Assembly: GCA_002104905.1 (NCBI GenBank)
Contig: MCFE01000819.1
Coordinates: 1 to 33,515 of the forward strand
Length of the DNA stretch: 33,515 nucleotides
Direction: 5' to 3'
Origin: Basidiobolus meristosporus CBS 931.73
Lineage: Eukaryota > Fungi > Basidiobolomycota
Part shown: positions 7,645-33,515 of the stretch, piece by piece
Numbering within the stretch: position 1 is the stretch's first letter
Layout of the letters: each line of letters begins with the position of its first letter
Translations under genes and position numbers: made by a program
Notes under the pieces: generated by a model
What the model saw: the letters and a program-made list of their open reading frames with translations, nothing else
Told to the model about the DNA's origin: nothing
Database searches by the model: none

Positions 7645-7901
7645 TGACTCAGAATCAACATTTTATGTAGCATATTATTGTCCTATATTCGAATATACCA
7701 ACAAGTATACACGCATCAGCATGTAGTAGAGTACAGATAAGCATACATGCATCAGCATTTAGTCAAGAACAAGTATGACATTTAGTAAAGGATTGATCTG
7801 TATCAGCATCGATGTATTTATTTGAGATGCGCAGCTCCAACGGATTATACACGAATAAAAGTATGCAGATGGTTAAATATTAGGGGAGGTAAGATTATGA
7901 C

Positions 7902-9237: not shown

Positions 9238-9533
9238 GGTAAGGGATTATGAGGAACTAGAAAAATGAAGTGCAAAAGCCAAAGAGTTATAGGAAAATTC
9301 CAGCGACTGTAACAATCATCAGCCAGCCCAGCATCCCAATCCAATGTGTATCATTTTGTTTGGATCGCAGTAACTCTCGATCTATTCTAGAATTCTTGAA
9401 ATTCAATCAAAACTCGACCAATTCACCGTCGCAACGTGGCTGCTGGATGGGCACTGACTACACTTGCAAACATACAACTAGCGCTGGATTTAGAATACGA
9501 ATGTTTATTGATTTCAAACCAAAAAGCGGCCGT

Positions 9534-10016
9534 TTAGATCAAAGTTTCGTAGGCAATAGGGTAGATGGTGGTGGGAGCATTGTCCTTGGTGGAGACATGA
9601 CGAGCCTCGCGGGGTTGGACAGGTTGACGCTTAAGATGGATGGATTGGCCAGCAGCCTTGGCTTCCTTCTTCTTTTGAGCGTTTTCCTTGACACGACGCA
9701 AGAAGTCATCACGGCACTTGGAGTGCTTGATGTGCTCAATACGGATGTTGACACGCTTCTCCATGTAACGGTTGCCGACACGCTTGTTCACGATGACACC
9801 GACGGAGGTCTTGGTGACGTTGTAGACAATACCGGTTCTGCCGTGGTAGAACTTGTGGGGCATACCCTTTTGGATGGAGGCGTTGGCCTTGATATCAACG
9901 ATATCACCAACCTTGTAGGTCTTCAAGTAAGTGGAAAGCTTGACGGGGCCATGTTCACGGAACTTCTGGGAGAACAAGTGACGGGTACGAGCACGATAAC
10001 CAAAAGAGTGAGGCAT
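9534..10016 (-). CDS. RPL21: 60S ribosomal protein eL21
   Basis: 160-aa ORF MPHSFGYRARTRHLFS...GDIVDIKANASIQKGMPHKFYHGRTG...RIEHIKHSKCR, typical of eL21. Confidence 0.98.
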   Translation of the reverse strand: MPHSFGYRARTRHLFSQKFREHGPVKLSTYLKTYKVGDIVDIKANASIQKGMPHKFYHGRTGIVYNVTKTSVGVIVNKRVGNRYMEKRVNIRIEHIKHSKCRDDFLRRVKENAQKKKEAKAAGQSIHLKRQPVQPREARHVSTKDNAPTTIYPIAYETLI

Positions 10017-10025
10017 TGTTGCTTA

Positions 10026-10148
10026 CTACGGATATCCAATGAAACTTGATATTAGTAAAGTCATAACCCAGCATGAACAAACAACACATTCGCTTGTCGA
10101 CTTCAAATTCCGCACTAATCTATCAACGAATATGCATACAACTCGTAC
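10026..10148 (-). other. Predicted 5'UTR intron of RPL21
   Basis: On the minus strand: GTACGA donor at 10148, TACTAAT branch-like site, CCGTAG acceptor ending at 10026, 9 nt before the ATG. Confidence 0.6.
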
Positions 10149-10400
10149 CTACAAGAGTTTCCACTAGGCTCGTGAAGGAGAAAAGGAAGTTTCTGTGTTT
10201 GTCAGAGTGCTTACTTTTGTTGACGCCAGGCCAGAAAAAAAAATCCCCCTTAAGCAGGGGTTGGATTTTTCGGGGCCTGCCGGGTGATTGGCCGGGGCCG
10301 GGGCGCATTGGAATTTTCACCCAAAGCTCGGGTCAGTTAAAAGTGTGTATTTTCGCCTGGAAACCTCCTTTCCTCTGGTCGGATTCAACAGCGGCGTAAC

Positions 10401-11139
10401 ATGGCACCCCCAAGAAATTGTATTCCATAGAACAGTATGTGTCCATATATCCTTGGTTTGACTGATTCGTGTTCTGTGGAAGAGACACCTAGCATATTCT
10501 CTGGGCATGAACGAATACTAGGTTGTTTGCTCCAAGTCAACGGAAAGTTGGGTCGCAGCCCGCACTTTACCATCCATTCATCTACTTTTAGGCTCCAAGA
10601 CCTACAAGGTCCCCAGACGTCCCTTCGAGAAGGAGCGTATTGACCAAGAATTGAAGATCATTGGTGAATACGGTCTCCGTAACAAGCGCGAGATCTGGAG
10701 AATTGGCTACACCCTCTCCAACATCCGTCGTGCTGCTCGTGAGCTTCTTACCTTAGACCCCAAGGATACCCGCCGTTTGTTCGAGGGTAACGCCCTCATC
10801 CGTCGTCTTATTCGCATTGGTGTCTTGGACGAGTCCAAGGCCAAGCTCGATTACGTCTTGGGTTTGAAGGTCGAAGATTTCTTGGAGCGCAGACTCCAAA
10901 CCCAGGTCTTCAAGCTTGGATTGGCCAAGTCCATCCATCACGCCCGTGTCCTCATCAAGCAAAGACACATCCGTGTTGGTAAGCAAGTCGTCGACATCCC
11001 CTCCTTCGTTGTTCGTTTGGAATCCCAAAAGCACATCGACTTCGCCTTGACCTCTCCCTATGGTGGTGGTCGCCCTGGCCGTGTCAAGAGAAAGAGAATG
11101 GCCGCTGCCGGTGGTGATGCCGAAGAAGATGAGGAATAA
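10401..11139 (+). CDS. RPS9: 40S ribosomal protein uS4 (S9)
   Basis: Exon 1 10401-10419 and exon 2 10592-11139 give [43 protein letters not shown]...[16 protein letters not shown]...[10 protein letters not shown]. Confidence 0.97.
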
Positions 11140-11341
11140 ATGTTACCGCAAGGACTTCCCTCTCCTTCAGTTTGTCATTATAATAAACAAGCAACATTCA
11201 CACACAGTCCATGATTATTTGTTACATCGTAATCAACACTAGGGTTCCCGCGAGGTTTCCTACGCACACACCAGAACTGTCACTCATTAAGTTTAATTTA
11301 ATTGAATTCATTCGTCTACTTGACACATAATTTACACTGGT

Positions 11342-12312
11342 TCATTTACGTCTACGTTTGGTCTCCCTGGCCTCATCGTCCACTGACCCATCGACCGAGG
11401 ACGAATCAACGCTCTGGAAATTGGACAACGTTAGGAGTGGTGGGAGGTGGGTGGTGGGTGGAACTCATGATCCAGCAGAAAGTCATTTACCTTGGATCTT
11501 CTCTCTTCACGGGCTTTCTGGATTTTTTGGACTACTCGGAGCAGCTCGTCCTCCAGCATTTTAAGCTCATCCTTCTTGGCAATCAAGACGGCCCCAGGCT
11601 AGGATAATAGATGTTAGGTACATGCTTTTGGTACGAAGCCCAACCTCAATTCCTTACGTCTTCAGGCTTGGGAAGCTCTATGCTTCGCCATTCTTCTTCG
11701 GAGATTTCGTAGCTAGCGAATCGTGGGTTACGAACAGCACACTCCCATGAGGACTGACGGACACTTACGTTCGTTTGTGTTCCAGCAATCTACGCTTAAT
11801 CTCCTCGCGTGTAAGTTTACCGCCGGTATTTACGATGCAGTTGTTCTTTCTCTTGATGCCTGGCCCTTGTTTCTTGGAGTTGATTTCTCCAATGACGAAT
11901 GGGTCCAGATGTAAACCAGCAAACTCTAAAATGGCAACCTTGCTTAGTCGGATAGGCCGTGCGAATTGTCCGTTTCCTTCCCATACCTGCGGTACTCTGT
12001 TGACCCAACATGCGCTGAAGCTGCAGGTTCATTTGTGCAATGGTCTTTCCAAATAAACATTGGGATTCGATGATTTTCGCCCAATTACCAATTCCGAACT
12101 TCATCACCGCTTTACGGAGGATGTGTACCTCTGGTTCTGTCCAGCCTAAGCAATAAACCAAAATTATCAACCGTTTTCTGGTGAGATGAGGTGGAAGGGA
12201 GTCTTGCTATACCAGGTGAAAGTGTACAATTCCACAAACTGGCGGAATCGTTAGAGCGCAAGACATTACGTGCTCCAACGGGCATGGAACGTGGCTTATA
12301 TACGTCAGTCAT
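11342..12312 (-). CDS. p1: MTA1c (6mA methyltransferase complex) subunit p1-like Myb/HTH protein, ~216 aa
   Basis: Six exons (12312-12213, 12145-11987, 11925-11769, 11712-11658, 11598-11491, 11413-11342) splice in frame. LWNCTLSPGWTEPEVHILRKAVMKFGIGNWAKIIESQCLFGKTIAQMNLQLQRMLGQQSTAEFAGLHLD matches my recollection of the p1 family signature. Confidence 0.75.
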
Positions 12313-12723
12313 GATTACACAACAAAGGACTTGTTTAGGAGAGGAGTGTGAGAGTGTATCAAAGACGGTCTCTTGCCAGAAGTGAGTTTCGACTGGCAAC
12401 AAGCAATGTTATTTATCAAATGGTGTTTATCCTTAGACTGGTGGAATTTTCCCAACTTAACCTGGCCTTTGTTTACTATTGTGAAAAATCTACTGCGGTC
12501 TCAAGGGTTCAACCAAAGTTAAACATCTCCTAAACGGAAATCGTCAAGTTAAGCATCTGTTTATGCGAGTGAAATCGGACCCTCCGCCATATTTGGATGG
12601 CACTTTTTTTTTCCTTGATTTTGTTTCTCTCACATTCTCTGTGATTAATAACTGTTTAATACAAAGAGAGGTGGAGTAGCTGGTTTGAGAGGCGCTTAGT
12701 TGACCACGAAACCTACCCGCGAC

Positions 12724-14187
12724 ATGGAGGAGCAATTTTTAGAAGTACGGGTTCTCACTGCAGTTTTCCAGAATACTCGTTTAACCGTTTTTCTGTTGCC
12801 CCACTTTGTAGTTAACCACTTTCTTGAACGACCCCAAGGCCGAGGTACGAATTCGATTGTTAGTCTTCTTGTTGTGACCGAACTAAATATCCTTGGGTCG
12901 CTAGGTCCGCCAATTGGCTGTCAAGCACGTATTAAGCTTCACCACCAAGGATTCTGGATATCTACCTCTATTCAAGAAACATGGACCCCAAGTTATTGGC
13001 GATTTAAAGAAATTGTGCAGAGAGCCCACTGTGAGTAGCCTGCACTCAGTAGCCCCAGGAAACCGAAGATTAATATGGGTTCCTCTATTCTCTAGCTTGT
13101 TGCCCACGATGCTCTCTCAGCCTTGATCAATCTTACCAGTGACCAGGAAATCATTGAGTACTTGAATGATATGGGCTTCATCAAGCTGTTGGTCCTAATT
13201 ATCATTGTAAGCAAACGACCCGTCCAATTTCGTAATTCCACTGCAAAGATGCTCATGTGCCTCTGACTCCACCAGATCCCCAAATCCATCCTAGCCGACC
13301 TTGCATGCATGCTTCTCGCCAACATTTCCAAGTCGGAATCTGTGTGCGCAAAGCTGATGGAGGCCACCAGCACCCCAGTTGATTCTTTGACCAAATCGCA
13401 TCGAGTAATTGACCAATTGGCCGAAATCTTTGTGAAAGGATACGAGAGAAAGTACAACACCAATGCGGAATTCCACTTCCTTGCCAGTGTGTTCGCCAAC
13501 ATCACCACCGTACGTAGAGCTGACAGCGCAACCGACGGGTTTCGGGCCATACTAACCGCTTTCTAGATCCCACCAGGCCGCAACTTCTTCATCGACAAGT
13601 CTGAGGCCGACAACGAGGCCCCACTTTCCAAGATCACTTGTTTCACTGAAGACAAGCACGTCATTCGTCGAGGCGGAGTCATCTCCACCATCAAGTATGT
13701 AGCAGCTCAGCACGCAAGCTCAGCACGCTCCTTTGTCTTTCGCATGGATTCTAATGTTTGAGTGTGTAGGAACTGCTGCTTCGCCACCGCCAGACACATG
13801 GAGCTTTTAGATGAAGAGCAAATCAACGTTCTCCCATCGATCCTACTTCCTTTGTGTGGTCCCGAAGAGTTCGATCTGGATGATATGGACGGTATGCCTG
13901 AGGAGGTTCAGCTTCTGCCCGAGTCCAAGAAGAGAGAGGCTGATCCTCATCTTCGACGCATCCTGCTCGAAGCACTGGTGTTGCTGACCACCACTCGTGA
14001 GGGCCGTGACATCCTTAGAGCCAAGAAGGTTTATCCCATTGTCCGAGAGGCCCACTTGGCCGAGCAAGACTCGGAGATCCAGGAAGTGGCCGATAGAATT
14101 GTGCAAATGATTATGCGCGACGAGCCCAAGATCGCGGAGCAAGAGCCAATGGAGGACGATGACGATGACAAGATCATTGAAATGTAA
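12724..14187 (+). CDS. HGH1: Hgh1/FAM203, eEF2 chaperone
   Basis: Spliced product: MEEQFLELTTFLNDPKAEVRQLAV...AHDALSALINL...LADLACMLLANISK...FHFLASVFANIT...FTEDKHVIRRGGVISTIKNCCF...ILLPLCGPEEFDLDDMDGMPEEVQLLPESKKREAD...ILLEALVLL. Confidence 0.92.
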
Positions 14188-14402
14188 GTCGGTGTCAAAT
14201 CGCCAATGTTAATTTAATGTACAAACATTACTTCGCCCATGTCTTGCGTGTTGCCACTTTGTATCTCCGAATAAAACTATAGATATCGCCAAGGAATTTT
14301 CTTCCATCCCATTTGGTTCGCTTTGGTTTGCTTTTTTTTATTGGATTTGATATTTGATCATTTCAATCGGCGTGAGGTCCGTATTTCCTGCGAGTGTATT
14401 GA

Positions 14403-16017
14403 ATGAGCCTCCCTCCAACATATGCACAGCAAGGAGCTGACCAGCCTCCTCACACACCCTATTTCCAACCTCCGGTAAGTTCGAGGCTCCCCTTTGAAGT
14501 GTAGCCCGATAGCTAATGGTACACCCCGTGCAATAGCCATACGCAATACCACCGGAGCATCTCTATCCAAACAACTTCCACAAGTCCATATCAATACGAG
14601 CAATACTATGCACCATACACAGCGGAACCAGCGCCACCGATGGCGATGAATTTAACTGGGGCCACAAATTTAGGTGAACAATGGTTTTTACCTACTCATG
14701 CTGCATACAACCATTCATCGACCCCTTTTAGTTGGTGCAGAAGCAGCCCCAATCTCGGCCGATCAGTCCTGGCTGGAATCCTGGCTAAAGACAAAGGACA
14801 TCTCTTTACCCACTGATAAAGCAGCCAAGAAGGGGGAGAGCTCCTTGCTCGAGGTTCGACGAAAAACCTTTCATTGTATGCAGCTGCAAGCCGAGTTTGA
14901 ACAGAAGATCTCTGACTTGGAGAAGGGTGGTTTGAATGCAGACGCAGACGACTGGGAGAAGAGGAGGCTGGAATTAGAAGAGTTGAAGGTTTGGCTGTCG
15001 TCGCACCCCTCAACCCGATCACCACTAACTGAACAGTCCGAATAGTCACAAATAAGAGAATCCCTGGACTCCTTGACCAGCAGCCCGAAGGAGCTCGAGA
15101 GGTTGAAACAAAAGATCGCGAAGAGAGAACGACACAAGGTGGGATAGCCTTACAATCCAATCATTCTTCGAGAGAGTCCGCTGACTTTATCAATTGGAAA
15201 AGAAATGGCGCAGGAGACACATCAAAAAGCTACAGGCTGTCAGAGATGAGCGACAACGCAAACGCGAGACCCTACACAAGGACATCGATGAATGGAGAGC
15301 CGAGTGGTTAGAGAAGGATAAAGTCACCAAGGAGGTACGCCGTCAGCATCGTATAAGCTAAGCAGCAAGTATCTTTTTCTACCCCAATCTCATAGGAAGC
15401 CGTCCGAAAGCTCAAGGCTGACACCAAAGTGGAGCAAGTCGAGCAGAAGCGGAACAAACACAAAGATCTCACGGAACTGCTGAAAGAGATGCTAAAGCTT
15501 CGCGACCTTCGACGAGAAAAGCTGAAAAAAGAAGGTAAGAGTAGATGGCGACCGTGGACAGCGCCAGTGATTAACATCCGCCCCCCATCCAGGCCATTAC
15601 TTCCCAGAACAAGAGGATCCATTCTTCGATCAGATTCGTCAGCTGGACGAAGCAATCCAACAAGAAGGAAAACAACTCGAGGACGCGACCACCGAAGCAA
15701 ACGAAAGCAAACGTAAAGAGGCGATCGAAGCTAGAATGAAGGAACGCGGCACCGACTCTATATTTGAGTATTATCACCAAGCGAAATTCGACTTGGACAA
15801 CCTTGTTCACATCAGGTACTTAGTCCTAATCCCAGCCCTAACCCCCTCAGCCCCCACGATACCCATCAACTAACCTCACCTTACTGTAAGACGTCAATGG
15901 GACGAATACATTGTTCCGCGAGGAACCTACGGCGCGTCCCGGATTCCCCCACGATACGTGGATCCAGCCCCGCCCGGAAACCATGTCTGGGCATCCTGTC
16001 TTGTCTTTAAGGAATAA
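14403..16017 (+). CDS. PDCD7: PDCD7 / U11-59K-like minor-spliceosome protein (5' end uncertain)
   Basis: Multi-exon coiled-coil protein with MLKLRDLRREKLKKEG, FEYYHQAKFDLDNLVHIRRQWDEYIV and ASRIPPRYVDPAPPGNHVWASCL, the PDCD7-type C-terminus. Start is either 14403 (needs a 1-nt indel in exon 2) or 14640. Confidence 0.72.
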
Positions 16018-16301
16018 ACCCAAACACCAAATTCACCATCAATCAACCAATTTTGATCCCGTTGATATAGTTGCTGATAAAGCGTCTGGGATGTAGCTAA
16101 TATGTAGAGCTGGACCGTAGCCACCATGCTTTTTGGGGGAGATCTGGAAACCAGGAAATCATCTAGATTCAGCTAGCGATTAATCCAGCACCCTGACCCA
16201 TTCATTAACCACGATCCTAATGGATATCGAAATTTTTCTAAATTATCAATGCCACTTCAGCAAGTTCACCTCTGACTGCATATTTCATAAAACTTCTCAC
16301 C

Positions 16302-18379
16302 ATGTACAGGGGAGCACCAAGATTCCTTACCACTATATCCAAGAGCCCCCTCCAAGCCATCCGCGGCGGCCATTGTTCACTAGCTGGCTCCGGCTCTCTT
16401 CGTCAATTTCATTCACAGAGCTCGCTTCTTCAAGCAAGTCCCATGAACGTCCCTTTCTCGGAGGAAGCGAAGGTCGAGAAACAATATGACATCGTGATTC
16501 TGGGCGGCGGCATAGCCGGCTCGTCGTTAGCCTGTGCTCTAGGTAATGGTCTCTGCTCGAATCCACAAGTCAGTTTTCTCACTACGTTTGATGAATAGCG
16601 GGCGCACCTGAGCTTCGCCAGAAGAAGATTGCCTTACTAGATGCTTTCGACCTCGGGAAAGTTCGCGACTGGGTACCTCCGGAAAAAGGCTTCATGAACC
16701 GAGTGGTTTCCTTGACGCCTAGCTCGGTCAAGTTCCTTCGCAGTATGATTTCCTGATATGCACTGCCCTCACCATGTATGCAGACTAAACATATAAAAAC
16801 ATAGGTATTGGTGCCTGGGACAGGGTTCGCGTAGAGCGCTCCATGCCATATCAGCATATGGAGGTAAACCGTTGCGAAGCTAGTCTTGACATGATGACAA
16901 CCCCATTCAACCATAAGTTTTAAACCAGGTCTGGGATGGGCTAGGTGACGGTCGAGTTCAATTCTCTACCGAAATGCTGGATTTCCCTGCCGAAGCCATG
17001 GCATGGATTATCGAGAACAACAACATACAATCGGCTGTGCTCCAGAAGCTGGCCGAATACGACAACGCAGTGGATGTTATCGATAATAGCAAAGTCCAGG
17101 AGATCTTTCACTCTACACCAGCCGAGCAGACATCGCCGGATCAAGCAGACACTTCTGAATGGCCAGTGGTCAGACTAGAAAATGGCACGACGCTTAGGAC
17201 TAGATTACTGGTAGGCTTCGGGTATTCGATCGAGCAGTCTGATGTCATCTAACACCGAGATTAAGGTTGGTGCCGATGGCGTCAATTCACCAGTCCGTAA
17301 ATTTGCTCAGATCGAATCCTACGGGTGGGATTACGACCAGCATGGCATTGTCGCTACTTTACAACACCAGTCCAATGTCGACGAGCCGTCCACTTTGGTG
17401 AACACTACCGCTTGGCAGCGATTCCTTCCAACCGGCCCTATTGCCATGCTCCCGGTAAGTGAATCCCGCCCTCCATACTTGACAACACTGTACTCATTGT
17501 CTTGGCAACCCGCTCAGCTTGACTCCAACCACTCATCTCTGGTGTGGTCAGTGCCCCCAAGCCTTGCTGCCAAGCTTAAGCTGTGCTCCCCAGAATTGTT
17601 TTCGCAACTCATCAATGCGGCCTATCGCCTGGTTCCCGCCGATCTCGACTACCTCTACACCCAAATCGGCGATGATGGCCAGGCCCTTTCAGACATAATG
17701 GGAGATATCGCATGGCGCGAGGAGCAAACTGGGCAAGTGACCAAGCATCACAGCCTACCACCCAAAGTTGTCAATATTCAGGACAAGAGTCGTGCTTCGT
17801 TCCCGTTCAGATTGAGAAACGCAGAAAGATACGTGGAGGAGCGCTTGGCACTAGTCGGGTGAGTCGCAATCGCATCCTCAGTGAAGAGCGGTGTACTAAT
17901 GCGATTGTATTAGCGATGCTGCGCACGCCACTCATCCCCTCGCCGGCCAAGGATTGAACTATGGGTTGGGGGATGTTCAATCGATCTCCAAAGTGATCAT
18001 TGATGGGGTTAGAAATGGCCAGGATATCGGTAGGCATCGGGTAGTGTGTTGGCTCGGATGACTTGCTCATTTGGTTCTTCGCAGGAAACATCAACGTTCT
18101 CACCCAATATTCCGCGGAACGATTTTTCCCCAATGCTGCGATGCTCGGCGCGGTTGACAAATTGAAGCGGCTGTTCGCATTCAATAGCGCGCCCATTGTG
18201 TGGGCCAGATCCTTCGGTTTAGACGCCACCAATGCCATGGGACCACTTAAGGTATGGATAGCAGCATCTGAATGATCCCCACCCACACCCACACCCACAA
18301 ACTGACATATCGCCTCCCCACTTTCCAGACGCAGATCGTGAAGTACGCCATGGGCTTGGAAACCTCGGTGAAACCTTAA
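16302..18379 (+). CDS. COQ6: Ubiquinone biosynthesis FAD monooxygenase Coq6
   Basis: Mitochondrial presequence; YDIVILGGGIAG (FAD GxGxxG); NRVVSLTP; VWDG; LLVGADGVNSPVRK; AWQRFLPTGPIAMLP; LVGDAAHATHPLAGQGLNYG; VDKLKRLF. Confidence 0.94.
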
Positions 18380-19036
18380 TATCCGTAGAAATGATGGTTA
18401 TTCTCAGACGGATGGGTTCGGATTGACCGATTTCTATCGAGGATAGTTTTGATTTTTGATTAAAATTCGCCTAGAAATAGGGTTCCCCACCCGATTCAAA
18501 TGAAGTGTTGTTGGTTCAGATTTAGTTAAATGGGCATTCTATCCACCCTGCTGAGACGCAACCCACATATTCATCCATAGCCCAAGCACGACAATAATCT
18601 CCGTACCGGATCTTTCCTGACGGTGAGCACCACCAGCAGGATCCCACATCAAACAACAACACTGCTCCAAGTGGGTGGGTAACGATCGGCAGGATTGGTG
18701 TGGACGGTGTGGGTGCCAAAAGAAGCTAGCACTTGCGAAACATAGATGGCCTAATCGATGGGATTTGGTTGGTGAAACGCGTGTATAAATCAATGGATTA
18801 CGAACGCGTCTGTGGATCCCACATGACATGTAGTAGGGCCGCGTTTTCGTGATGGCAACCAATTGGATATGCAACTTGACTCTATTTCGATTCTGATAAG
18901 ATGCGCCCTTGCGGAATTCGTATAAATAGCGGGGCCCTCTATGGGTGACAATAGTTCCATCTCTTTTTCAATTTATCTTCTGTATACATCGATCACTCCC
19001 CCTAACCTAGCCCCCCCCCTCCATAATCTAATCAAA

Positions 19037-19294
19037 ATGGCGAAAGAGAAGTCCACCAAAAGATCCGGAGGGAAGAAGCTCTCCCCCTATAATAAGTTCA
19101 TGAAAACCGAGCTTCCAAAGGTGAAGGCCGAAGACCCGTCGATTTCTCACAAAGACGCGTTCAAGGTGGCGGCCGGCAGATGGAAAGCCTCCGCCGAGAA
19201 CCCAGCCAACAAGAAGGAGAGCAAGGAGGTGAAGGAGTCCAAGGAACCAAAGGAATCCAAGGAGTCCAAGACCGAGGAGGAGACGAAAGAGTAA
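19037..19294 (+). CDS. Small YABBY/HMG-box-like protein, 85 aa
   Basis: MAKEK...KKLSPYNKFMKTELPKVKAEDPSISHKDAFKVAAGRWK, the YABBY-type HMG helix pattern, plus a KESKE repeat tail. TATAAATA near 18921. Confidence 0.8.
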   Translation: MAKEKSTKRSGGKKLSPYNKFMKTELPKVKAEDPSISHKDAFKVAAGRWKASAENPANKKESKEVKESKEPKESKESKTEEETKE

Positions 19295-19518
19295 GGGTTG
19301 GCGGTGCTGCGGAAGGCTTTTTTTTCGTGTATAGACTCTAGTGTATATCAGTGAACATTTTCTTCGATTTTTCTGTGAAAATTTAATAAAGTTCCTTGTT
19401 ACAAACGGATGCATAGATTGTCTGGGAGGGGGGATTTGTCATTGGTCGCAATGGGTCAGGGCAGGATGCGGCAAAGTGGCGGTGTGGGATGGGCTGCTGA
19501 GTTGATCGTGATCTTTCG

Positions 19519-20241
19519 CTACAGAGTCGTCCAGAACACCGAAATCACCGACACCAGCAGGATCTCTACGTTGAGGGCGACTGCTTCAACCGCGCTTTCG
19601 ATCGGTGTGCTGCCTGGCTTGATCATTGGGGGAATGATTGTTGGGATGGGCTGGGCTTTGCTTGGAGTGGGAGAAATGGTGCCACTGGCCGCGGTCGTTG
19701 ACTTGCTTGAAGATGGCGTGAGAGTGCCACTGGCTGAAGGTTTCAAATTCACATTCGAGGGTGATGAGCTGGTAGGACTAGGGCTAGGCTAGGGCTGACT
19801 GATGCAGAGCTACCGCTGCTCGTGGTGATGTTGAAAAATGGTGAAAACGAAGTACCCGAGCCCCCGTTGGCACCTAACGCGTATTGGCCAGCGGCGATGT
19901 TGGCTGGGATGGCCCAGTTGTATCTCCCGGTTGATGAGGTGATATTTTCCGCTATCACGCTCACCAGCTTCAAATTGATTGCTGGCCCGTTCAGCAGCTG
20001 TAGATTAATGGAGCTGGGCATAGGGGCGCTGTCGTTGTTGTCCATCCTGTGAAGAAAACATGTCCGTTAGTAGAGGTGGCTTAGGGAAGTCTGATTCGGG
20101 GAGTAATCACCATGTTATCAGGTGGCTGGTCCCTGCTTCCCATGTGGCGGCTATGGGTGCGGTAAATGCCAGGCTAGCTTCAACCGAGGCTTGCTCGCAC
20201 AAGAAGATGGCTAGGATAGATGCGGTGAGGATATTCAACAT
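19519..20241 (-). CDS. GPI-anchored Ser/Thr-rich cell-surface protein (Kre9/Knh1-N-like Ig domain), apparent 1-bp deletion near 19787
   Basis: Signal peptide MLNILTASILAIFLCEQASVEA; FTAP...W..G..ITW; LQLLNG...YNWAIP...GQYAL...FSPFFNI. Exons 20241-20111 and 20046-19519. S/T/P stalk and hydrophobic C-terminus (ILLVSVISVFWTTL). Confidence 0.8.
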
Positions 20242-25029: not shown

Positions 25030-25378
25030 CCTATTGAGATATTTATCGCGGTGAACCTTGTGTCCACACCTAAACCTCGACATCAACTCAACCACTTGAA
25101 TGCCAGCGTAGGAACATTGTTCCCCGACCGGAACTTCAGCCGAGGTTCGCCTGGATTCTTTTCCCTAGAATAGGATGTCTCTCAAAAATCCCCAGAAGCC
25201 CCTAAAACCTCGTACACATGCTCTGGTGACCGTTTCCAGTACATCCCGCTGGCTTGCCATTCCAATGGCCATGTCGATGTCCATATATCACTGCTACATC
25301 CCATGAATCATCATGCAAATACCAAATCCCCAACCGGCTCTCCCAGTTGCTTCCGACGTCTCCCCCATCTGTGCAACA
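25030..25378 (+). mobile_element. Decayed solo LTR A (retains CpGs)
   Basis: CACCTAAA at 25067, TCTCAAAAATCCCCAGAAGCCCCTAAAAC..TACACATG core and a TGCAACA end, collinear with the LTR at 26699-27048. Start approximate. Confidence 0.45.
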
Positions 25379-25451
25379 CCTACACCTTTGGACTGCCCAT
25401 CAAGTGCTAATCACAAAGATGCATCATGGTAGCGTCCAATTGGATACGGCC

Positions 25452-25798
25452 TGATGTGATTATTTGGTTTACACCTAAACCACGCATATTACGTAAGATG
25501 ATTCTACTTGGCTTTTTGCTAAGTTATGAATCACTTACCTAAGATTTAGCTTGTAAGATACTTTTCCTTGAATTGGTGAAGATCTGGAAGTGATTCGTAT
25601 TCTTGAACCAGTCCGAAAGCCCCCAAATCTTGCACACAGCTTCTTGAGACCTACCTTGAAGCATTTTTATCATTAACCCTAAAATGTTCCCCCAAAAGTG
25701 AATATGCTCTATGCAAGCCCAGTGTAACACCATATGAATATCATGCAACTCTTCCACCTCCCCAAATCACTTCCAACACCCCCTGAAATCTTGCAGTA
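25452..25798 (+). mobile_element. Decayed solo LTR B
   Basis: TGATGTGA start, CACCTAAA at 25472, AGCCCCCAAATCTTGCACACA core, ACTTCCAACAC...TTGCAGTA end; 347 bp. Confidence 0.6.
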
Positions 25799-26062
25799 TG
25801 GCCAAGGTTTCTCTTGACCCTAGAGGGATCTGATGATTGCCAATTTGCATGCCCAATCAGGAGTATGCATGTATACTGATGTCCACAACTGATGGATGAC
25901 TTGTATGAGTCGGCCACTCAATGACAAAGGCCAGTACCTGCAAGACCACTCCAGCTATGGTACAGCTTGCTACATGTGTTATCCTATAATGGGGGGCCTT
26001 TTGGCAGGTTTGACAACTTTTGTTTCATTGGTACCAAATGCTTTAATAGGCAATATCATGTC

Positions 26063-26420
26063 TGTTGCAATATTCTGAGGAGTATTGGAAGTGATGTGGA
26101 GAACTAGAGGATTTACATCTTATTCACTTGTAGATTTACTGATCAAAAGTATGGTATTTATACTTTTGATAAAGCTGAGCAAACAAACGTGTAGAGTTTG
26201 TTAAGAAAGGTCCCAAGAATATGTGGACAAAGTTTGGGGGCTTTTGGACAGCTTTGAGAAAGATCATAATCTGGGTACCTGATAATTTGGTGAAAATATT
26301 CTGAGTAAATCCCAACAAGAAATCTGGTCAGGACAGAATGCTAATCAAAGAGTAGGATCTATGTGCCTAAGTTAGCATCAATATTTAGGTGACAATTTAA
26401 TAATTACAATAATGTTAACA
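26063..26420 (-). mobile_element. Decayed solo LTR C (inverted)
   Basis: Reverse complement aligns by eye along the intact LTR: CACCTAAATATT, CTAACTTAG, AGAATATT, AGGTACCC, TTCTCAAAG.TGTCCAAA, CCCCAAACTTTG, ACTTCCAATA...TGCAACA. Confidence 0.75.
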
Positions 26421-26432
26421 CCTAAACATTGC

Positions 26433-26698
26433 TGATGTAAGAGTGTTGGAGATATTAAAGGGAATTAAGGACATGTTGACAATATAATTCTCACTTGATG
26501 CCTTACCAGATGTAAAAGTAATACTTCAACTTTAATAAGGTCTTGGCAAGATAGACACAGGAAACATGTCCAGCAAGATCCAAAGTGCATGCCCACAAAG
26601 CTGGGGGTCCATAACAGACCAGAGATCTTTCATATTCAGAGCCTTTGATACTTTGGTGGATTATTCCTAGTGAATCTCAAGAAGCAATTTGGGCAGAC
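26433..26698 (-). mobile_element. Decayed solo LTR D (inverted, missing its first ~80 bp)
   Basis: Reverse complement shares TGCCAAGACC, TATTACTTTTACAT and AATATCTCCAA.ACTCTTACA.CA with the intact LTR. The alignment stops where that LTR begins. Confidence 0.7.
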
Positions 26699-27048
26699 TG
26701 TTGTAAAAATTTGTATTTCCACCTAAATATTCACCTAACTTAGTCACTTAGATCATCACCTTCAAATCCTAGAGAATACTGACCAAAATTCCTTGTCGGG
26801 ACTAATTTAGAATATTCTCACTGAAATACCAGGTACCCGGAACATGAAAATTCTCAAAGTTGTCCAAACAGCCCCAAACTTTGCACACATGTTCTTGGGA
26901 TCTTCCTTAACCTATTCTATGTGTTTGTAATGCCAAGACCAGGAAAAAGTATTAATATTACTTTTACATTCAATAAATCATTAAGTGAAAACCACATAAT
27001 CTACTTGTCCTCCCAATGACTTCCAATATCTCCAAGACTCTTACAACA
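26699..27048 (+). mobile_element. 5' LTR of a Ty1/Copia element, 350 bp
   Basis: TGTTGTAA...TTACAACA perfect 8-bp terminal inverted repeat, immediately followed by the PBS; internal AATAAA near 26973. Confidence 0.85.
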
Positions 27049-27060
27049 GGTTATGAGCCC
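27049..27060 (+). promoter_or_regulatory. Primer-binding site, Ty5/copia-type (internal tRNAiMet priming)
   Basis: GGTTATGAGCCC directly abutting the LTR's terminal CA. Confidence 0.8.
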
Positions 27061-29080
27061 CAAGCTGTCACTCTCTGCAATGTCTACTACTGCTATTACT
27101 GGTTGTTGGATGGATCTAACTATCAAGTGTGGAAGGTGAAGATGAAGCAGCTGCTACAAGAAAGAGGCCTTTGGGATATTGTCATGGGAGAAGAATGCCC
27201 TCCTAAAAGTGTGGGAGAGGAAGCCTTGAAGTACCAGAAGAAAGAATAAAGTGCCTTTAACTGCATTTGCCTTAATGTTAATGACAAATTGCTAATTCAA
27301 TGCTCAAGAGCAAAAATGGCAAAGAATGCCTGGAAGGCATTAGAAGATACCTACCAGTCATGTTCAGCTGCCAAGAAAATGTATCTGAGATGAAAATTCT
27401 TTACTACAAAGATGCTGCCAGGAGAAGAAATGAAAAACCTAATCAACAGAATTACCTTGCTGGTGGATGAGATAGAATCTGTGGGCGTACCAACTACTGA
27501 TGAGGATGTGATAGTTACCATCCTGAATAGCCTGACAGACAAGTTTCAGGGCCTTGTATCAGCCCTAGAGTCCAGAACTGAAGATTTGACCTTAAATTAC
27601 GTATATGGAAGGCTCCTGGATGAAGAATTAAGAAAATCAAGTGCAAATAAGAAGGAAGAAGAAAATGCTTTAATAAGCAATGATAACCAACAAAGGAGGT
27701 ACCCAAGACCCTACAAAGGCAACAGCAACCTGTTTTGCAACTAATGCAAAAGGAAAGGACACACATCAGACCGGTGTCTCAAAAAGGAAGATAATCAGCA
27801 AAAGAAGCCTGAATATGGAAATGCTGTAACAACTGAAGATAGACTATTCATATCTGCACTAAATATGACCACAAACAAGGATTCTTAGATGTGGTATATT
27901 GACTCTGGAGCTACTCAACACTTTACACACCAAAAAGAACTTTTTACCCAATATCAAGAAATTCCAATTAAGAGGGTTTTCATGGGTAATGATAGATCAC
28001 TTGATGCAGTGGGAGAAGGAACTATCCAAGTAAACCTTAGAAGCAGTGAAGGAAGCCATACACTGACCTTTGAAGAAGTACTCTATGAACCAGAAATAGC
28101 CAAGAACCTACTCTCTGTAAGCAAGGCCACAGCGGAAGGACTCAGTTTCAGTTTTGACAATTCTGGATGCAGGATCACTGATCAAAATGGTGCCCATATT
28201 GCTTTGGGCATCAGAGATCAGAATCTATACAAGTTGACTTATATTCCATCATATTTGGAAGCCAATATAAGTAACTTAGATGAAGAAACGCCAATGCTTT
28301 GGCACAGGAGATTTGGGCGCATCAATTTTGATTATTTGTGCAAAATGATCAAAGATCAGCTAACTTCTGAAGAAAAAATTGATCCTCCAGCTAATTTGGA
28401 GCACTGTGAAGCCTGCATATATGGGAAACAAGTCAGACAACTGTTCAACAGCTCTGGGTTAATCAAAACTAAGAAAAAATTAGATCTAATTCACTCAGAT
28501 CTGAGTGGACCTATGCAAAATTTATCCTTAGGCAGGATGAAGTATTTAATCACTTTTATTGATGATTATACAAGATACACATGGGTCTACTTCATGGAGT
28601 GAGAGGAAGAAGCTCTGTCAAAGTTTGGGGAGCTTCAAGCCATGTTGGAGAGAGAAACTGGTGAAAAAATCAAGAAAATACGCTCTGACAATGGTGGAGA
28701 ATATACCTCAAAACTCTTCATCCACTTCTGCAAAATTCATGGGATAAAGCAAGAGACTACTGTACCATACTCCCCAAAGCAAAATGGAGTATCAGAACAT
28801 GCTAACAGATCAATAATTGGCATGGCAAGATATATGATCCCTGATCAAAAATTATCCTATGATTTTTGGGCGGAATCAGTTGCCACTGCTGTATACCTTA
28901 AAAATAGAAGTTATAACAGAATACTTCAGGATTCTACTCCATTTGAAGCATGGTATGGATACAGACCAAGTGCAGAACATCAAAGAATATTTGGATGTAC
29001 AGCTTATGTCAAGAAATTGCCTGGATATCAGTCAAAATTTGAGCCAAAAAGCGTAAAATGCATATTTTTGGGCTACTGCA
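27049..29080 (+). mobile_element. Ty1/Copia internal region (gag-PR-integrase), inactivated and truncated before RT
   Basis: One frame: LDGSNYQVWKVKM, UBN2-type gag, CN*CKRKGHTSDRC knuckle, WYIDSGATQHF protease, LWHRRFGRIN...CEACIYGKQ, IHSDLSGP / FIDDYTRY / IRSDNGGEY / QNGVSEHANR, KCIFLGY. In-frame stops at 27247, 27391, 27742, 27886 and 28600. Confidence 0.95.
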
Positions 29081-29217
29081 ATTGCTGCTGTGCTGATGAC
29101 TATGATGACTGCTATGATGATGATTATGATGACTGCTGTGAAGATGACTACTATGATGATTGCTATGATGACTGCTATGATGACTGCTATGATGACTGCT
29201 GTGATGACTGCTGCTAG
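29081..29217 (+). pseudogene. 5'-truncated copy of the Asp/Cys/Tyr peptide ORF, fused in frame to the Copia integrase
   Basis: ...KCIFLGYCN|CCCADDYDDCYDDD...DDCC*; the nucleotide match to the unit starts at 29081. Confidence 0.85.
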
Positions 29218-29342
29218 GCTGGGCTCTCAAAAGCAGATACATATACTTTTTGAGCAGTGTGAAAGTTTTGGCATAGTAAGATATTTTTGAATAAACACAT
29301 TTCAAACCTACTAGTTCTTAAAAGGCTGATTAATCAAGGAAC

Positions 29343-29390
29343 AAGTCCCTGCTTAGGGTCAGCTAAAAAAGTCCCTGCTTAGGGTCAGCT
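29343..29390. repeat. Duplicated 22-mer AAGTCCCTGCTTAGGGTCAGCT (26-bp period), present in every array unit
   Basis: Copies at 29343-29364 and 29369-29390, and at +1059n. Each contains the CCCT-GCTT-AGGG mini-palindrome. Confidence 0.9.
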
Positions 29391-29481
29391 CAAGTCAGTG
29401 CATATTTAAGGGTGACTGGCAAAATATTTGAAAAAAAAATCAAAACCACTGATTATCCCCTCCCATGTATTTTCAGCTATT

Positions 29482-29550
29482 AGCATCAGGTGGGTATTGA
29501 TCCCTGGGCCTGATGAGTGCCCTGCCCAGCCTTAACCACTAGACTATGGC
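29482..29550 (-). ncRNA. tRNA-derived Pol III element (A box + B box), tRNA pseudogene or SINE-head-like
   Basis: A box TAGTCTAGTGG (29546-29536) and B box GATCAATAC (29502-29494), 44 nt apart as in tRNA. D-arm GTCT/AGGC; 3' half resembles tRNA-Gly after CpG decay; T9 run at 29439-29431. No proper cloverleaf. Confidence 0.5.
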
Positions 29551-29793
29551 TATATCTTCAAGGAATCTGACAGAGGTGTGACTTGGATGGTCACTGATTG
29601 CAGCCAGCCTGATGGCATTATTGCTGGAGATTCTCAACCACTCATTCTGAGGTGATTGTGCTCAGCATGGGTTACACTGGTGATGAGTATGATCAAATCA
29701 GTTGCATGCTTGCCAACAACTGATGGACTATCTTGCCATCACTCCTGACTTGTTATATCCTATCATAGACTCAGGCTGAGACCTATGGGGACT

Positions 29794-29802
29794 TCTATAT
29801 AT
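29794..29802 (+). promoter_or_regulatory. Putative TATA box of the array peptide gene (repeated in each unit)
   Basis: CTATATATT about 145 bp before ATG 29944 and followed by a pyrimidine-rich leader; AATAAA lies about 72 bp after each stop. Confidence 0.4.
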
Positions 29803-29943
29803 TGGCAAGATGCTGCTTCCTACCAGCCATCCTCTCAGTCTCCTCTTCTCCCCCTCATAGCAACTGCAACTGCAACCAGGAACTTTGCTCTTGCTGATAC
29901 AAGATCCTTCTCTTTTGCCACACTCAGTCCACCACCTTTCACT

Positions 29944-30276
29944 ATGAGATCCCTTCTAAGCAGAGCCTCCCTTGTGGCCATGGTCAGTGTTCTCCTTCTG
30001 AAGACCAGCTTGGCTTTACCCCAGGTGGAGGTAGCTACCACTGGAAGTGCACTCCAGAAGAGATGGTACAACTCCTATGGATATGGTGATGATTGCTGTG
30101 ATGATTATGATGATGATTGCTATGATGACTGGGAAGATGATTGCTGCTGTGATGATGACTATGATGACTGCTATGATGATGATTATGATGACTGCTGTGA
30201 AGATGACTACTATGATGATTGCTATGATGACTGCTATGATGACTGCTATGATGACTGCTGTGATGACTGCTGCTAG
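29944..30276 (+). CDS. Secreted KR-processed Asp/Cys/Tyr-rich peptide precursor, copy 1 (110 aa)
   Basis: MRSLLSRASLVAMVSVLLLKTSLA (signal-like) | LPQVEVATTGSALQKR (pro-peptide with dibasic site) | WYNSYGYGDDCCDDYDDDCY...DDCC*. The upstream in-frame ATG at 29785 precedes the TATA-like box and is probably not used. Confidence 0.75.
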   Translation: MRSLLSRASLVAMVSVLLLKTSLALPQVEVATTGSALQKRWYNSYGYGDDCCDDYDDDCYDDWEDDCCCDDDYDDCYDDDYDDCCEDDYYDDCYDDCYDDCYDDCCDDCC

Positions 30277-30540
30277 GCTGGGCTCTCAAAAGCAGATACA
30301 TATACTTTTTGAGCAGTGTGAAAGTTTTGGCATAGTAAGATATTTTTGAATAAACACATTTCAAACCTACTAGTTCTTAAAAGGCTGATTAATCAAGGAA
30401 CAAGTCCCTGCTTAGGGTCAGCTAAAAAAGTCCCTGCTTAGGGTCAGCTCAAGTCAGTGCATATTTAAGGGTGACTGGCAAAATATTTGAAAAAAAAATC
30501 AAAACCACTGATTATCCCCTCCCATGTATTTTCAGCTATT

Positions 30541-30609
30541 AGCATCAGGTGGGTATTGATCCCTGGGCCTGATGAGTGCCCTGCCCAGCCTTAACCACTA
30601 GACTATGGC
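30541..30609 (-). ncRNA. tRNA-derived Pol III element, unit 2
   Basis: Identical to 29482-29550. Confidence 0.5.
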
Positions 30610-31002
30610 TATATCTTCAAGGAATCTGACAGAGGTGTGACTTGGATGGTCACTGATTGCAGCCAGCCTGATGGCATTATTGCTGGAGATTCTCAACCAC
30701 TCATTCTGAGGTGATTGTGCTCAGCATGGGTTACACTGGTGATGAGTATGATCAAATCAGTTGCATGCTTGCCAACAACTGATGGACTATCTTGCCATCA
30801 CTCCTGACTTGTTATATCCTATCATAGACTCAGGCTGAGACCTATGGGGACTTCTATATATTGGCAAGATGCTGCTTCCTACCAGCCATCCTCTCAGTCT
30901 CCTCTTCTCCCCCTCATAGCAACTGCAACTGCAACCAGGAACTTTGCTCTTGCTGATACAAGATCCTTCTCTTTTGCCACACTCAGTCCACCACCTTTCA
31001 CT

Positions 31003-31335
31003 ATGAGATCCCTTCTAAGCAGAGCCTCCCTTGTGGCCATGGTCAGTGTTCTCCTTCTGAAGACCAGCTTGGCTTTACCCCAGGTGGAGGTAGCTACCAC
31101 TGGAAGTGCACTCCAGAAGAGATGGTACAACTCCTATGGATATGGTGATGATTGCTGTGATGATTATGATGATGATTGCTATGATGACTGGGAAGATGAT
31201 TGCTGCTGTGATGATGACTATGATGACTGCTATGATGATGATTATGATGACTGCTGTGAAGATGACTACTATGATGATTGCTATGATGACTGCTATGATG
31301 ACTGCTATGATGACTGCTGTGATGACTGCTGCTAG
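31003..31335 (+). CDS. Secreted Asp/Cys/Tyr-rich peptide precursor, copy 2
   Basis: Identical translation to copy 1. Confidence 0.75.
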   Translation: MRSLLSRASLVAMVSVLLLKTSLALPQVEVATTGSALQKRWYNSYGYGDDCCDDYDDDCYDDWEDDCCCDDDYDDCYDDDYDDCCEDDYYDDCYDDCYDDCYDDCCDDCC

Positions 31336-31599
31336 GCTGGGCTCTCAAAAGCAGATACATATACTTTTTGAGCAGTGTGAAAGTTTTGGCATAGTAAGAT
31401 ATTTTTGAATAAACACATTTCAAACCTACTAGTTCTTAAAAGGCTGATTAATCAAGGAACAAGTCCCTGCTTAGGGTCAGCTAAAAAAGTCCCTGCTTAG
31501 GGTCAGCTCAAGTCAGTGCATATTTAAGGGTGACTGGCAAAATATTTGAAAAAAAAATCAAAACCACTGATTATCCCCTCCCATGTATTTTCAGCTATT

Positions 31600-31668
31600 A
31601 GCATCAGGTGGGTATTGATCCCTGGGCCTGATGAGTGCCCTGCCCAGCCTTAACCACTAGACTATGGC
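31600..31668 (-). ncRNA. tRNA-derived Pol III element, unit 3
   Basis: Identical to 29482-29550. Confidence 0.5.
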
Positions 31669-32061
31669 TATATCTTCAAGGAATCTGACAGAGGTGTGAC
31701 TTGGATGGTCACTGATTGCAGCCAGCCTGATGGCATTATTGCTGGAGATTCTCAACCACTCATTCTGAGGTGATTGTGCTCAGCATGGGTTACACTGGTG
31801 ATGAGTATGATCAAATCAGTTGCATGCTTGCCAACAACTGATGGACTATCTTGCCATCACTCCTGACTTGTTATATCCTATCATAGACTCAGGCTGAGAC
31901 CTATGGGGACTTCTATATATTGGCAAGATGCTGCTTCCTACCAGCCATCCTCTCAGTCTCCTCTTCTCCCCCTCATAGCAACTGCAACTGCAACCAGGAA
32001 CTTTGCTCTTGCTGATACAAGATCCTTCTCTTTTGCCACACTCAGTCCACCACCTTTCACT

Positions 32062-32394
32062 ATGAGATCCCTTCTAAGCAGAGCCTCCCTTGTGGCCATG
32101 GTCAGTGTTCTCCTTCTGAAGACCAGCTTGGCTTTACCCCAGGTGGAGGTAGCTACCACTGGAAGTGCACTCCAGAAGAGATGGTACAACTCCTATGGAT
32201 ATGGTGATGATTGCTGTGATGATTATGATGATGATTGCTATGATGACTGGGAAGATGATTGCTGCTGTGATGATGACTATGATGACTGCTATGATGATGA
32301 TTATGATGACTGCTGTGAAGATGACTACTATGATGATTGCTATGATGACTGCTATGATGACTGCTATGATGACTGCTGTGATGACTGCTGCTAG
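32062..32394 (+). CDS. Secreted Asp/Cys/Tyr-rich peptide precursor, copy 3
   Basis: Identical translation to copy 1. Confidence 0.75.
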   Translation: MRSLLSRASLVAMVSVLLLKTSLALPQVEVATTGSALQKRWYNSYGYGDDCCDDYDDDCYDDWEDDCCCDDDYDDCYDDDYDDCCEDDYYDDCYDDCYDDCYDDCCDDCC

Positions 32395-32658
32395 GCTGGG
32401 CTCTCAAAAGCAGATACATATACTTTTTGAGCAGTGTGAAAGTTTTGGCATAGTAAGATATTTTTGAATAAACACATTTCAAACCTACTAGTTCTTAAAA
32501 GGCTGATTAATCAAGGAACAAGTCCCTGCTTAGGGTCAGCTAAAAAAGTCCCTGCTTAGGGTCAGCTCAAGTCAGTGCATATTTAAGGGTGACTGGCAAA
32601 ATATTTGAAAAAAAAATCAAAACCACTGATTATCCCCTCCCATGTATTTTCAGCTATT

Positions 32659-32727
32659 AGCATCAGGTGGGTATTGATCCCTGGGCCTGATGAGTGCCCT
32701 GCCCAGCCTTAACCACTAGACTATGGC
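32659..32727 (-). ncRNA. tRNA-derived Pol III element, unit 4
   Basis: Identical to 29482-29550. Confidence 0.5.
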
Positions 32728-33120
32728 TATATCTTCAAGGAATCTGACAGAGGTGTGACTTGGATGGTCACTGATTGCAGCCAGCCTGATGGCATTATTG
32801 CTGGAGATTCTCAACCACTCATTCTGAGGTGATTGTGCTCAGCATGGGTTACACTGGTGATGAGTATGATCAAATCAGTTGCATGCTTGCCAACAACTGA
32901 TGGACTATCTTGCCATCACTCCTGACTTGTTATATCCTATCATAGACTCAGGCTGAGACCTATGGGGACTTCTATATATTGGCAAGATGCTGCTTCCTAC
33001 CAGCCATCCTCTCAGTCTCCTCTTCTCCCCCTCATAGCAACTGCAACTGCAACCAGGAACTTTGCTCTTGCTGATACAAGATCCTTCTCTTTTGCCACAC
33101 TCAGTCCACCACCTTTCACT

Positions 33121-33453
33121 ATGAGATCCCTTCTAAGCAGAGCCTCCCTTGTGGCCATGGTCAGTGTTCTCCTTCTGAAGACCAGCTTGGCTTTACCCCA
33201 GGTGGAGGTAGCTACCACTGGAAGTGCACTCCAGAAGAGATGGTACAACTCCTATGGATATGGTGATGATTGCTGTGATGATTATGATGATGATTGCTAT
33301 GATGACTGGGAAGATGATTGCTGCTGTGATGATGACTATGATGACTGCTATGATGATGATTATGATGACTGCTGTGAAGATGACTACTATGATGATTGCT
33401 ATGATGACTGCTATGATGACTGCTATGATGACTGCTGTGATGACTGCTGCTAG
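33121..33453 (+). CDS. Secreted Asp/Cys/Tyr-rich peptide precursor, copy 4
   Basis: Identical translation to copy 1. Confidence 0.75.
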   Translation: MRSLLSRASLVAMVSVLLLKTSLALPQVEVATTGSALQKRWYNSYGYGDDCCDDYDDDCYDDWEDDCCCDDDYDDCYDDDYDDCCEDDYYDDCYDDCYDDCYDDCCDDCC

Positions 33454-33515
33454 GCTGGGCTCTCAAAAGCAGATACATATACTTTTTGAGCAGTGTGAAA
33501 GTTTTGGCATAGTAA

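Follow-up and report, generated by a model that had tools for sequence, protein, structure and literature searches.

Several kinds of small secreted or metal-binding peptides provide points of comparison for the locus described here, a tandem array of identical genes at the end of contig MCFE01000819.1 of Basidiobolus meristosporus CBS 931.73 (assembly GCA_002104905.1). Each gene is predicted to encode a protein of 110 amino acids (aa) with a signal-peptide-like N-terminus, a single dibasic site and a tail dominated by Asp, Cys and Tyr (the D/C/Y tail); the window, i.e. the whole stretch of DNA that was analyzed, is the entire 33,515-bp contig. This species is a gut-associated, occasionally pathogenic, early-diverging fungus. 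The Kex2-processed repeat precursors (KEPs), exemplified by the yeast alpha-factor precursors, combine a signal peptide for the endoplasmic reticulum (ER) with L-x-K-R-type cleavage sites and a small secreted product. By definition their core, 8 aa or longer, is repeated in tandem three times or more, with every repeat bounded by dibasic sites, and among 1461 fungal assemblies the strain CBS 931.73 has the most of them, 43 (PMC7329392, Umemura 2020). The precursors of peptides made on ribosomes and then modified after translation (RiPPs) of the ustiloxin/dikaritin type have a short repeated core between Lys-Arg sites and a neighboring gene for DUF3328/UstYa or another tailoring enzyme. The Asp-rich matrix proteins of animals (molluscan Aspein and Asprich, the coral acid-rich proteins) and the polyanions of marine coacervate adhesives consist of a signal peptide followed by an Asp-rich disordered polyanion. 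Metallothioneins and phytochelatin-like binders are small, Cys-rich molecules with CC and C-x-x-x-C spacings; metallothioneins are cytosolic and have no signal peptide and a near-zero content of aromatic residues.

The array was first described in an earlier note, made from the sequence alone, as a 1059-bp unit repeated at least 4.2 times, with a TATA-like box, a 110-aa open reading frame (ORF) and an AATAAA signal in each copy. This description held: the window contains 4.19 copies, and the box, the ORF and the signal were read in every unit. The fungal origin assumed in that note is likewise correct. When each position was compared with the position 1059 bp further on, a single mismatch was found, at 29093, and the copies are 100% identical from 29094 onward. 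Internal repeats of 12, 51 and 63 nt recur every 1059 bp (TRF). The features of the array and its genes are as follows.

29081..33515, plus strand: tandem array, 4.19 copies of the 1059-bp unit, running off the contig end
29081..29217, plus strand: first partial copy, consisting of the final 45 tail codons joined in frame to a truncated copia integrase ORF; not a gene
29796..29802, plus strand: TATATAT, 148 bp before the ATG, present in every unit (motif match only)
29944..30276, plus strand: gene copy 1, 110 aa, single exon, TAG stop (GenBank gene model; codon score)
29944-30015, plus strand: signal-peptide-like part of copy 1 (manual inspection)
30016-30063, plus strand: pro-region of copy 1, ending in L-Q-K-R, with K39-R40 at 30058-30063
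30064-30273, plus strand: 70-aa D/C/Y peptide of copy 1 (translation)
30349..30354 (also 29290-29295), plus strand: AATAAA, 73 bp past the stop, present in every unit (motif match only)
31003..31335, plus strand: gene copy 2, identical (GenBank model)
32062..32394, plus strand: gene copy 3, identical (GenBank model)
33121..33453, plus strand: gene copy 4, identical, 62 bp from the contig end (GenBank model)

The other end of the array was located through the exact 110-aa product on a second contig, MCFE01000963.1, which begins inside a unit. Its edge carries one gene copy, encoding an identical protein by a DNA sequence with one synonymous base change, and the spacer of this edge unit differs from that in the window in having a 26-nt motif five times rather than twice, along with three substitutions and an indel of 1 nt. 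On MCFE01000963.1 the array stops at the equivalent of window position 29900, 43 bp short of the next expected ATG, and is followed by approximately 9 kb without called genes and with degenerate remnants of copia-type retrotransposons. At the left edge, in the window, the ORF at 28642-29217 reads as a copia integrase and then continues as ...GYCNCCCADDYDD... of the D/C/Y tail. In other copia copies among the read contigs, position 29082 is followed by GAGAGTAAAGCATAC, which encodes ESKAYRLYN, the usual continuation of the integrase. Since the integrase is fused to the tail here and continues intact in the other copies, both the copia element and the first unit were truncated by a rearrangement, and the edge is more than a plain insertion site. 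The left and right edges are in different phases of the unit, and therefore at least one of them is secondary. The array is real, and it is either very young or homogenized.

Each repeat unit comprises one complete predicted gene, with a promoter-like box, an ORF containing the signal-peptide-like part and the dibasic site, and AATAAA, and the GenBank annotation of GCA_002104905.1 calls the 110-aa model in every copy. By manual inspection, the N-terminus resembles a signal peptide, as the earlier note had proposed: Arg residues at positions 2 and 7 are followed by a hydrophobic core (A8-L19; 9-residue Kyte-Doolittle mean up to 2.99), S-L-A at positions -3 to -1 and then L-P, in keeping with the three-region plan of signal peptides and the -3/-1 rule. 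The pro-region ends in QKR, likewise in agreement with that note, and K39-R40 is the sole dibasic site of the protein, with Leu at P4, located exactly where ordinary sequence meets the D/C/Y tail. Leu at P4 together with Lys-Arg makes an alpha-factor-type Kex2 site. The 70 residues past this site were recounted, and the composition given before proved exact: 33 Asp, 16 Cys, 13 Tyr, 2 Glu and 2 Trp, no Lys or Arg, and CC at the C-terminus, the remainder being 2 Gly, 1 Asn and 1 Ser. The tail is thus 47% Asp, 23% Cys and 19% Tyr, with a net charge of about -35. It is predicted to be disordered on the basis of the ESM Atlas model of the exact sequence, for which the predicted local distance difference test score (pLDDT) is 0.43 and the predicted template modeling score (pTM) is 0.09. 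The ATG is preceded by A at -3. Over the first 47 codons the annotated frame has the best codon score of all six (0.149 versus -0.05 or lower), a value at the low end in comparison with the real genes of the window (0.16-0.59). Two other readings of the ORF were rejected. A 163-aa version starting at an upstream ATG would bury the signal peptide, has the TATA-like box within it and departs from the annotation, in which the 110-aa start was chosen. A His/Ser-rich ORF on the minus strand (109 aa, TTG start) is the automatic antisense of a 12-nt repeat, with no signal peptide and a worse codon score.

Compared with the systems outlined above, the locus appears from its sequence to work like a Kex2-type secreted precursor, of which only the peptide composition has no counterpart in the protein collections and literature searched. 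It shares with KEPs the ER signal peptide (here called manually), the L-x-K-R-type site and a small secreted product (here predicted). However, KEPs have at least three cores per protein, whereas this protein has one dibasic site and one 70-aa polyanionic core, and the repetition is by the 1059-bp unit; the difference from a classical Kex2 repeat precursor, with one core per gene and repetition at the gene level, had been recognized in the earlier note. The protein thus lacks the core repeats of the definition and is not a KEP, and no KEP core described in the literature was found to match the 70-aa polyanionic core. The ustiloxin/dikaritin precursors differ in having a short repeated core between Lys-Arg sites, in place of a single Lys-Arg and a single 70-aa core, and no DUF3328/UstYa neighbor occurs in the visible flanks of the array. 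With the Asp-rich matrix and coacervate proteins the peptide has in common an Asp-rich disordered polyanion and, as in marine cements, Tyr and Cys for cross-linking, but there is no homology and the animal proteins lack the regular D-D-C-Y/D-D-C-C pattern, so that the likeness is compositional only; mineralization is not known in Basidiobolus. The small size, the richness in Cys and the CC and C-x-x-x-C spacings recall metallothioneins, from which the protein is set apart by its predicted secretory route, by 13 Tyr and 2 Trp among 70 residues and by its 47% Asp. With a signal-peptide-like N-terminus, an aromatic-rich tail and no match to a Pfam family, it does not belong among the metallothioneins.

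Four sequencing runs, X1, X2, X3 and X5, were compared with the array, and the number of copies was estimated from X1 and X2. Because these two runs derive from the sample that was also assembled, they are a test of the assembly and not of the strain; they are DNA runs, as judged from their even depth across the promoter and the ORF. Read contigs from both bear the unit-to-unit joint (30139 to 29081). Mismatch-free unit contigs have a word depth of approximately 4,400-4,900, versus 85-380 for individual diverged copia contigs, which makes the unit approximately 20-50 times as deep as a single copia copy, although the depth of a read contig is not a copy number and any estimate from it is rough. 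From this excess and from the two contigs that end inside the repeat, the array or arrays probably hold tens of copies. That two contigs end inside arrays of the unit is consistent with a length beyond what the PacBio assembly could span (assembly type from PMC7466969). The reads also contain variant units at a depth of approximately 1,600-2,000, about 40% of that of the main type, in which the tail is longer by 3 (an extra Glu codon), 27, 114 or 117 nt. All these length variants are in frame. Because they are absent from the assembly, the unassembled part of the array is heterogeneous in tail length.

On balance, we lean toward reading the unit as a genuine gene, young, amplified and specific to its lineage, whose polyanionic peptide product would be released by Kex2 and secreted. 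Besides the gene-like anatomy, the GenBank models and the strain's wealth of KEPs, points in its favor are that all tail variants stay in frame and that the one coding change of the edge copy is synonymous. According to this model, the 24 N-terminal residues would send the chain to the ER and be cut off after S-L-A, and a Kex2-type protease would then cleave past L-Q-K-R40, shedding a 16-residue pro-piece. The product released would be a 70-aa peptide beginning with WYNSYGYG and carrying a charge of about -35. Outside the cell, the most plausible role of this polyanion would be to sequester divalent cations, Ca2+ via its carboxylates and softer metals via its thiolates; alternatively, its Cys and Tyr residues could be cross-linked into wall or adhesive material. 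Sequestration of cations would be the simplest function for a peptide with 35 carboxylates and 16 thiols, and cross-linking would be the main alternative. Amplification at the level of the gene would raise the dose.

The spacers and the left flank of the array contain repeats of their own, which are listed below.

29300..29556, minus strand: SINE-like dispersed high-copy repeat piece, about 255 bp of each spacer (read depth)
29340-29391, minus strand: two 26-nt motifs containing TTAGGG, the tail end of the SINE-like repeat
~29478-29556, minus strand: tRNA-like head with A-box-like and B-box-like motifs, GCCATAGTCTAGTGGTTAAGG...GGGATCAATACC
27016..29080, plus strand: degenerate copia-type retrotransposon fragment ending at the array edge, with gag, Pol beta-barrel, pre-integrase, integrase core and half of an SH3-like domain (Pfam)

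The summed read depth over approximately 29300-29556 is 27,000-111,000, versus 5,000-20,000 elsewhere in the unit. This piece of the spacer, which resembles a short interspersed element (SINE), is a dispersed high-copy repeat because its depth exceeds that of the remainder of the unit. The SINE-like repeat is 5-20 times as deep as the unit, and on the locus of MCFE01000963.1 it lies at L005:480-790. Its head resembles a transfer RNA (tRNA), but no tRNA was called in the spacer by ARAGORN or Rfam, and the head showed no significant cloverleaf fold (z -0.7). A SINE fragment lies inside every unit, and therefore the gene and the fragment were amplified together, after insertion of the SINE. The copia fragment was recognized by its Pfam matches (Pol_BBD, 1.6e-24; gag_pre-integrs, 1.4e-12; rve, 7e-08; SH3_retrovirus, positions 1-42 of 73), and its ORFs within 27016-29080 are broken by frameshifts. 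The copia family is hugely abundant in the genome, with a summed depth of 1-2 million versus a few thousand for the array, and it is seemingly transcribed, having contigs in run X3, which is probably complementary DNA (cDNA). The region 25200-27000, between a mitochondrial-carrier gene and the copia gag, is AT-rich (GC 0.35-0.40) and free of long ORFs, and may hold the copia 5' long terminal repeat or other repeat debris.

A rival explanation, which we regard as unlikely and yet as deserving serious weight, is that the array is a silent satellite-like repeat. A 1-kb segment that includes part of a SINE as well as a (GAT-GAC-TGC-TAT)n microsatellite would have been multiplied by unequal exchange, and the ORF would be fortuitous or a proto-gene, called ab initio and yielding no peptide. 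The array does have the head-to-tail, high-copy, homogenized organization of a satellite. A number of further observations favor this explanation or otherwise weigh against the preferred gene model, and they concern the tail, the surroundings, the lack of relatives and the lack of transcripts.

The tail consists of an expanded repeat of 12 nt, GAT-GAC-TGC-TAT, and resembles a microsatellite. It uses the codons TAT and GAT, whereas among the genes of the window TAC is favored and GAT is as frequent as GAC. Such a repeat is by construction open in two of the plus strand's three frames and in one minus-strand frame. The in-frame variants of tail length fall under the same heading, since slippage in DNA of 3-nt period is expected to give them anyway. 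The array is situated in transposon-rich DNA, with degenerate copia flanks on both sides and a dispersed repeat in the spacer of each unit. Comparison of the edge copy with the window gave one synonymous change in 333 coding bases versus three substitutions and two indels in approximately 726 non-coding bases, and these differences between the window and MCFE01000963.1 are too few to show constraint. The near-perfect identity of the copies would have left no time for selection to act, and with no relatives found there is likewise no conservation to point to.

No relative was found among 5.8 billion clustered proteins, either with the whole protein or with residues 1-50, by exhaustive phmmer comparison with 1.84 billion representatives, or in the PDB; the JGI metagenomes gave 423 pattern matches, of which none was confirmed, and Pfam gave no family at E <= 1. 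The earlier note, which had recognized no family, is borne out by all these protein, metagenome, Pfam and PDB searches. The protein collections do not contain the query, although GenBank has its models, and proteins of very low complexity may be under-represented there, which makes the lack of relatives a weaker argument than the numbers suggest. As for expression, run X3 has loose ends with poly(A)/T and adapter sequence, short contigs and 25% of words, and is probably a poly(A) cDNA run. It has zero depth on 29130-30139, despite the tens of copies of the unit, though it has contigs on the neighboring copia element; this is one library whose kind is itself a guess, and read contigs testify to presence rather than to absence. 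The runs listed for the unit included none of RNA. In run X5, from another strain, the sole match at the 90% threshold was a diverged D/C/Y-like one of 90 bp, and the part encoding the signal peptide went unmatched. The earlier note had named three outcomes that would reduce the tail to an expanded microsatellite in satellite DNA, namely no signal-peptide prediction, no transcripts under any condition and no relatives sharing the architecture. The last two were partly found, in that no such relatives turned up and no contig of the probable cDNA run lies on the unit, and with the tail visibly an expanded repeat they keep the satellite explanation alive.

Several features speak against a silent satellite. 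In each unit a good signal-peptide-like N-terminus is combined with L-x-K-R exactly at the tail junction, A is found at -3 and the TATA-like box and AATAAA lie at sensible distances, and the codon score is highest in the annotated frame. The strain is, moreover, unusually rich in Kex2-type precursors, and one library from cultured cells cannot rule out stage-specific expression. We retain the young gene for a secreted polyanionic peptide as the preferred explanation.

A less probable alternative, to which we assign only a slight chance, accepts the gene as real and takes its product to be a substrate and not a free chelator. The peptide could be the precursor of a RiPP-like compound, or it could serve as structural material, its Tyr and Cys residues being oxidatively cross-linked (as dityrosine, disulfide or cysteinyl-Tyr) into a spore-wall material or a conidial adhesive. 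The capilliconidia of Basidiobolus are adhesive and its zygospores have thick walls, absence from a cDNA library of vegetative cells would suit use at a particular stage, and the composition alone, in which 13 of the 70 residues are Tyr and 16 are Cys, is suggestive. An analogy is offered by the tyrosine-rich, cysteine-rich oocyst wall proteins of coccidia, which are reported to be cut to small Tyr-rich peptides that become cross-linked (PMC4776368). Nevertheless, no tailoring gene is located near either array end: neither an oxidase nor a tyrosinase, a DUF3328/UstYa gene or any other such gene was found in the 29 kb upstream (by Pfam for the called genes within 18 kb) or in the 9 kb past the other end. 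The RiPP-like role, which the earlier note had listed among its options, thus gains no support from the context.

Finally, the possibility that a single-copy gene was wrongly expanded, or its copies wrongly homogenized, by long-read assembly and polishing is suggested by the location of the array at a contig end and by the 100% identity of the copies, which polishing may exaggerate, but this very improbable artefact is largely refuted and essentially excluded by the joint present in short-read-type contigs of two runs, by the error-free unit contigs at approximately 20-50 times single-copia depth and by the second contig that ends in the same 1059-bp unit.

The remainder of the window, approximately 1-25,000, contains ordinary genes, including those for RPL21, RPS9, a GT2-like protein, Myb, DUF383/384, PDCD7, a COQ6-like FAD monooxygenase, Ccdc124, Kre9, endosulfine, glyoxalase I and the mitochondrial carrier. 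The RPL21 protein (9534-10016, minus strand) shares a cluster, at an identity of 90% or higher, with three more RPL21 proteins of the same strain, encoded on contigs of 205-266 kb. These additional RPL21 proteins hint that the genome was duplicated on a large scale or is polyploid.

Some candidate similarities of the 110-aa protein were considered and set aside. A PDB match to viperin (residues 17-57, 20 bits, E 0.003) covers the last signal-peptide residues together with the pro-region and was judged to be due to chance. The best ESM Atlas matches, at 0.65 and 0.59, are below the level reached by shuffled proteins, and the names attached to Atlas matches (Phytophthora mating-induced M96, alpha-factor, lantibiotic and sonorensin precursors) were not taken as evidence. 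The only phmmer match of the first search, at E 0.95, was P0001, an unrelated protein of 129 aa with a likeness in composition only. P0001, from a 1977-bp contig at NCBI, has a membrane-anchor-like segment and a C-terminal tail rich in Asp, Glu, Trp, Tyr and Cys, DWYDECEEGWYDEEEDWYDD...DDDCYDDYYGYED.

The significance of the array depends on whether it is expressed. A silent array would illustrate how satellite-like repeats become "hypothetical proteins" through ab initio annotation. A far-reaching and rather improbable interpretation is that the peptide represents a new class of fungal extracellular polyanions, made in bulk from tens of gene copies at one stage of the life cycle, which would act as a scavenger of cations in the animal gut or as the anionic partner of cationic peptides in a coacervate cross-linked through Cys and Tyr, for conidial adhesion or hardening of the spore wall. 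If the genes are expressed, the array would provide a secreted peptide whose composition is unmatched in the protein collections and papers searched, from a fungus known for its unusually large stock of processed secreted peptides, and it would offer a simple test case in which the expansion of a microsatellite behind a signal peptide yields a new secreted product.

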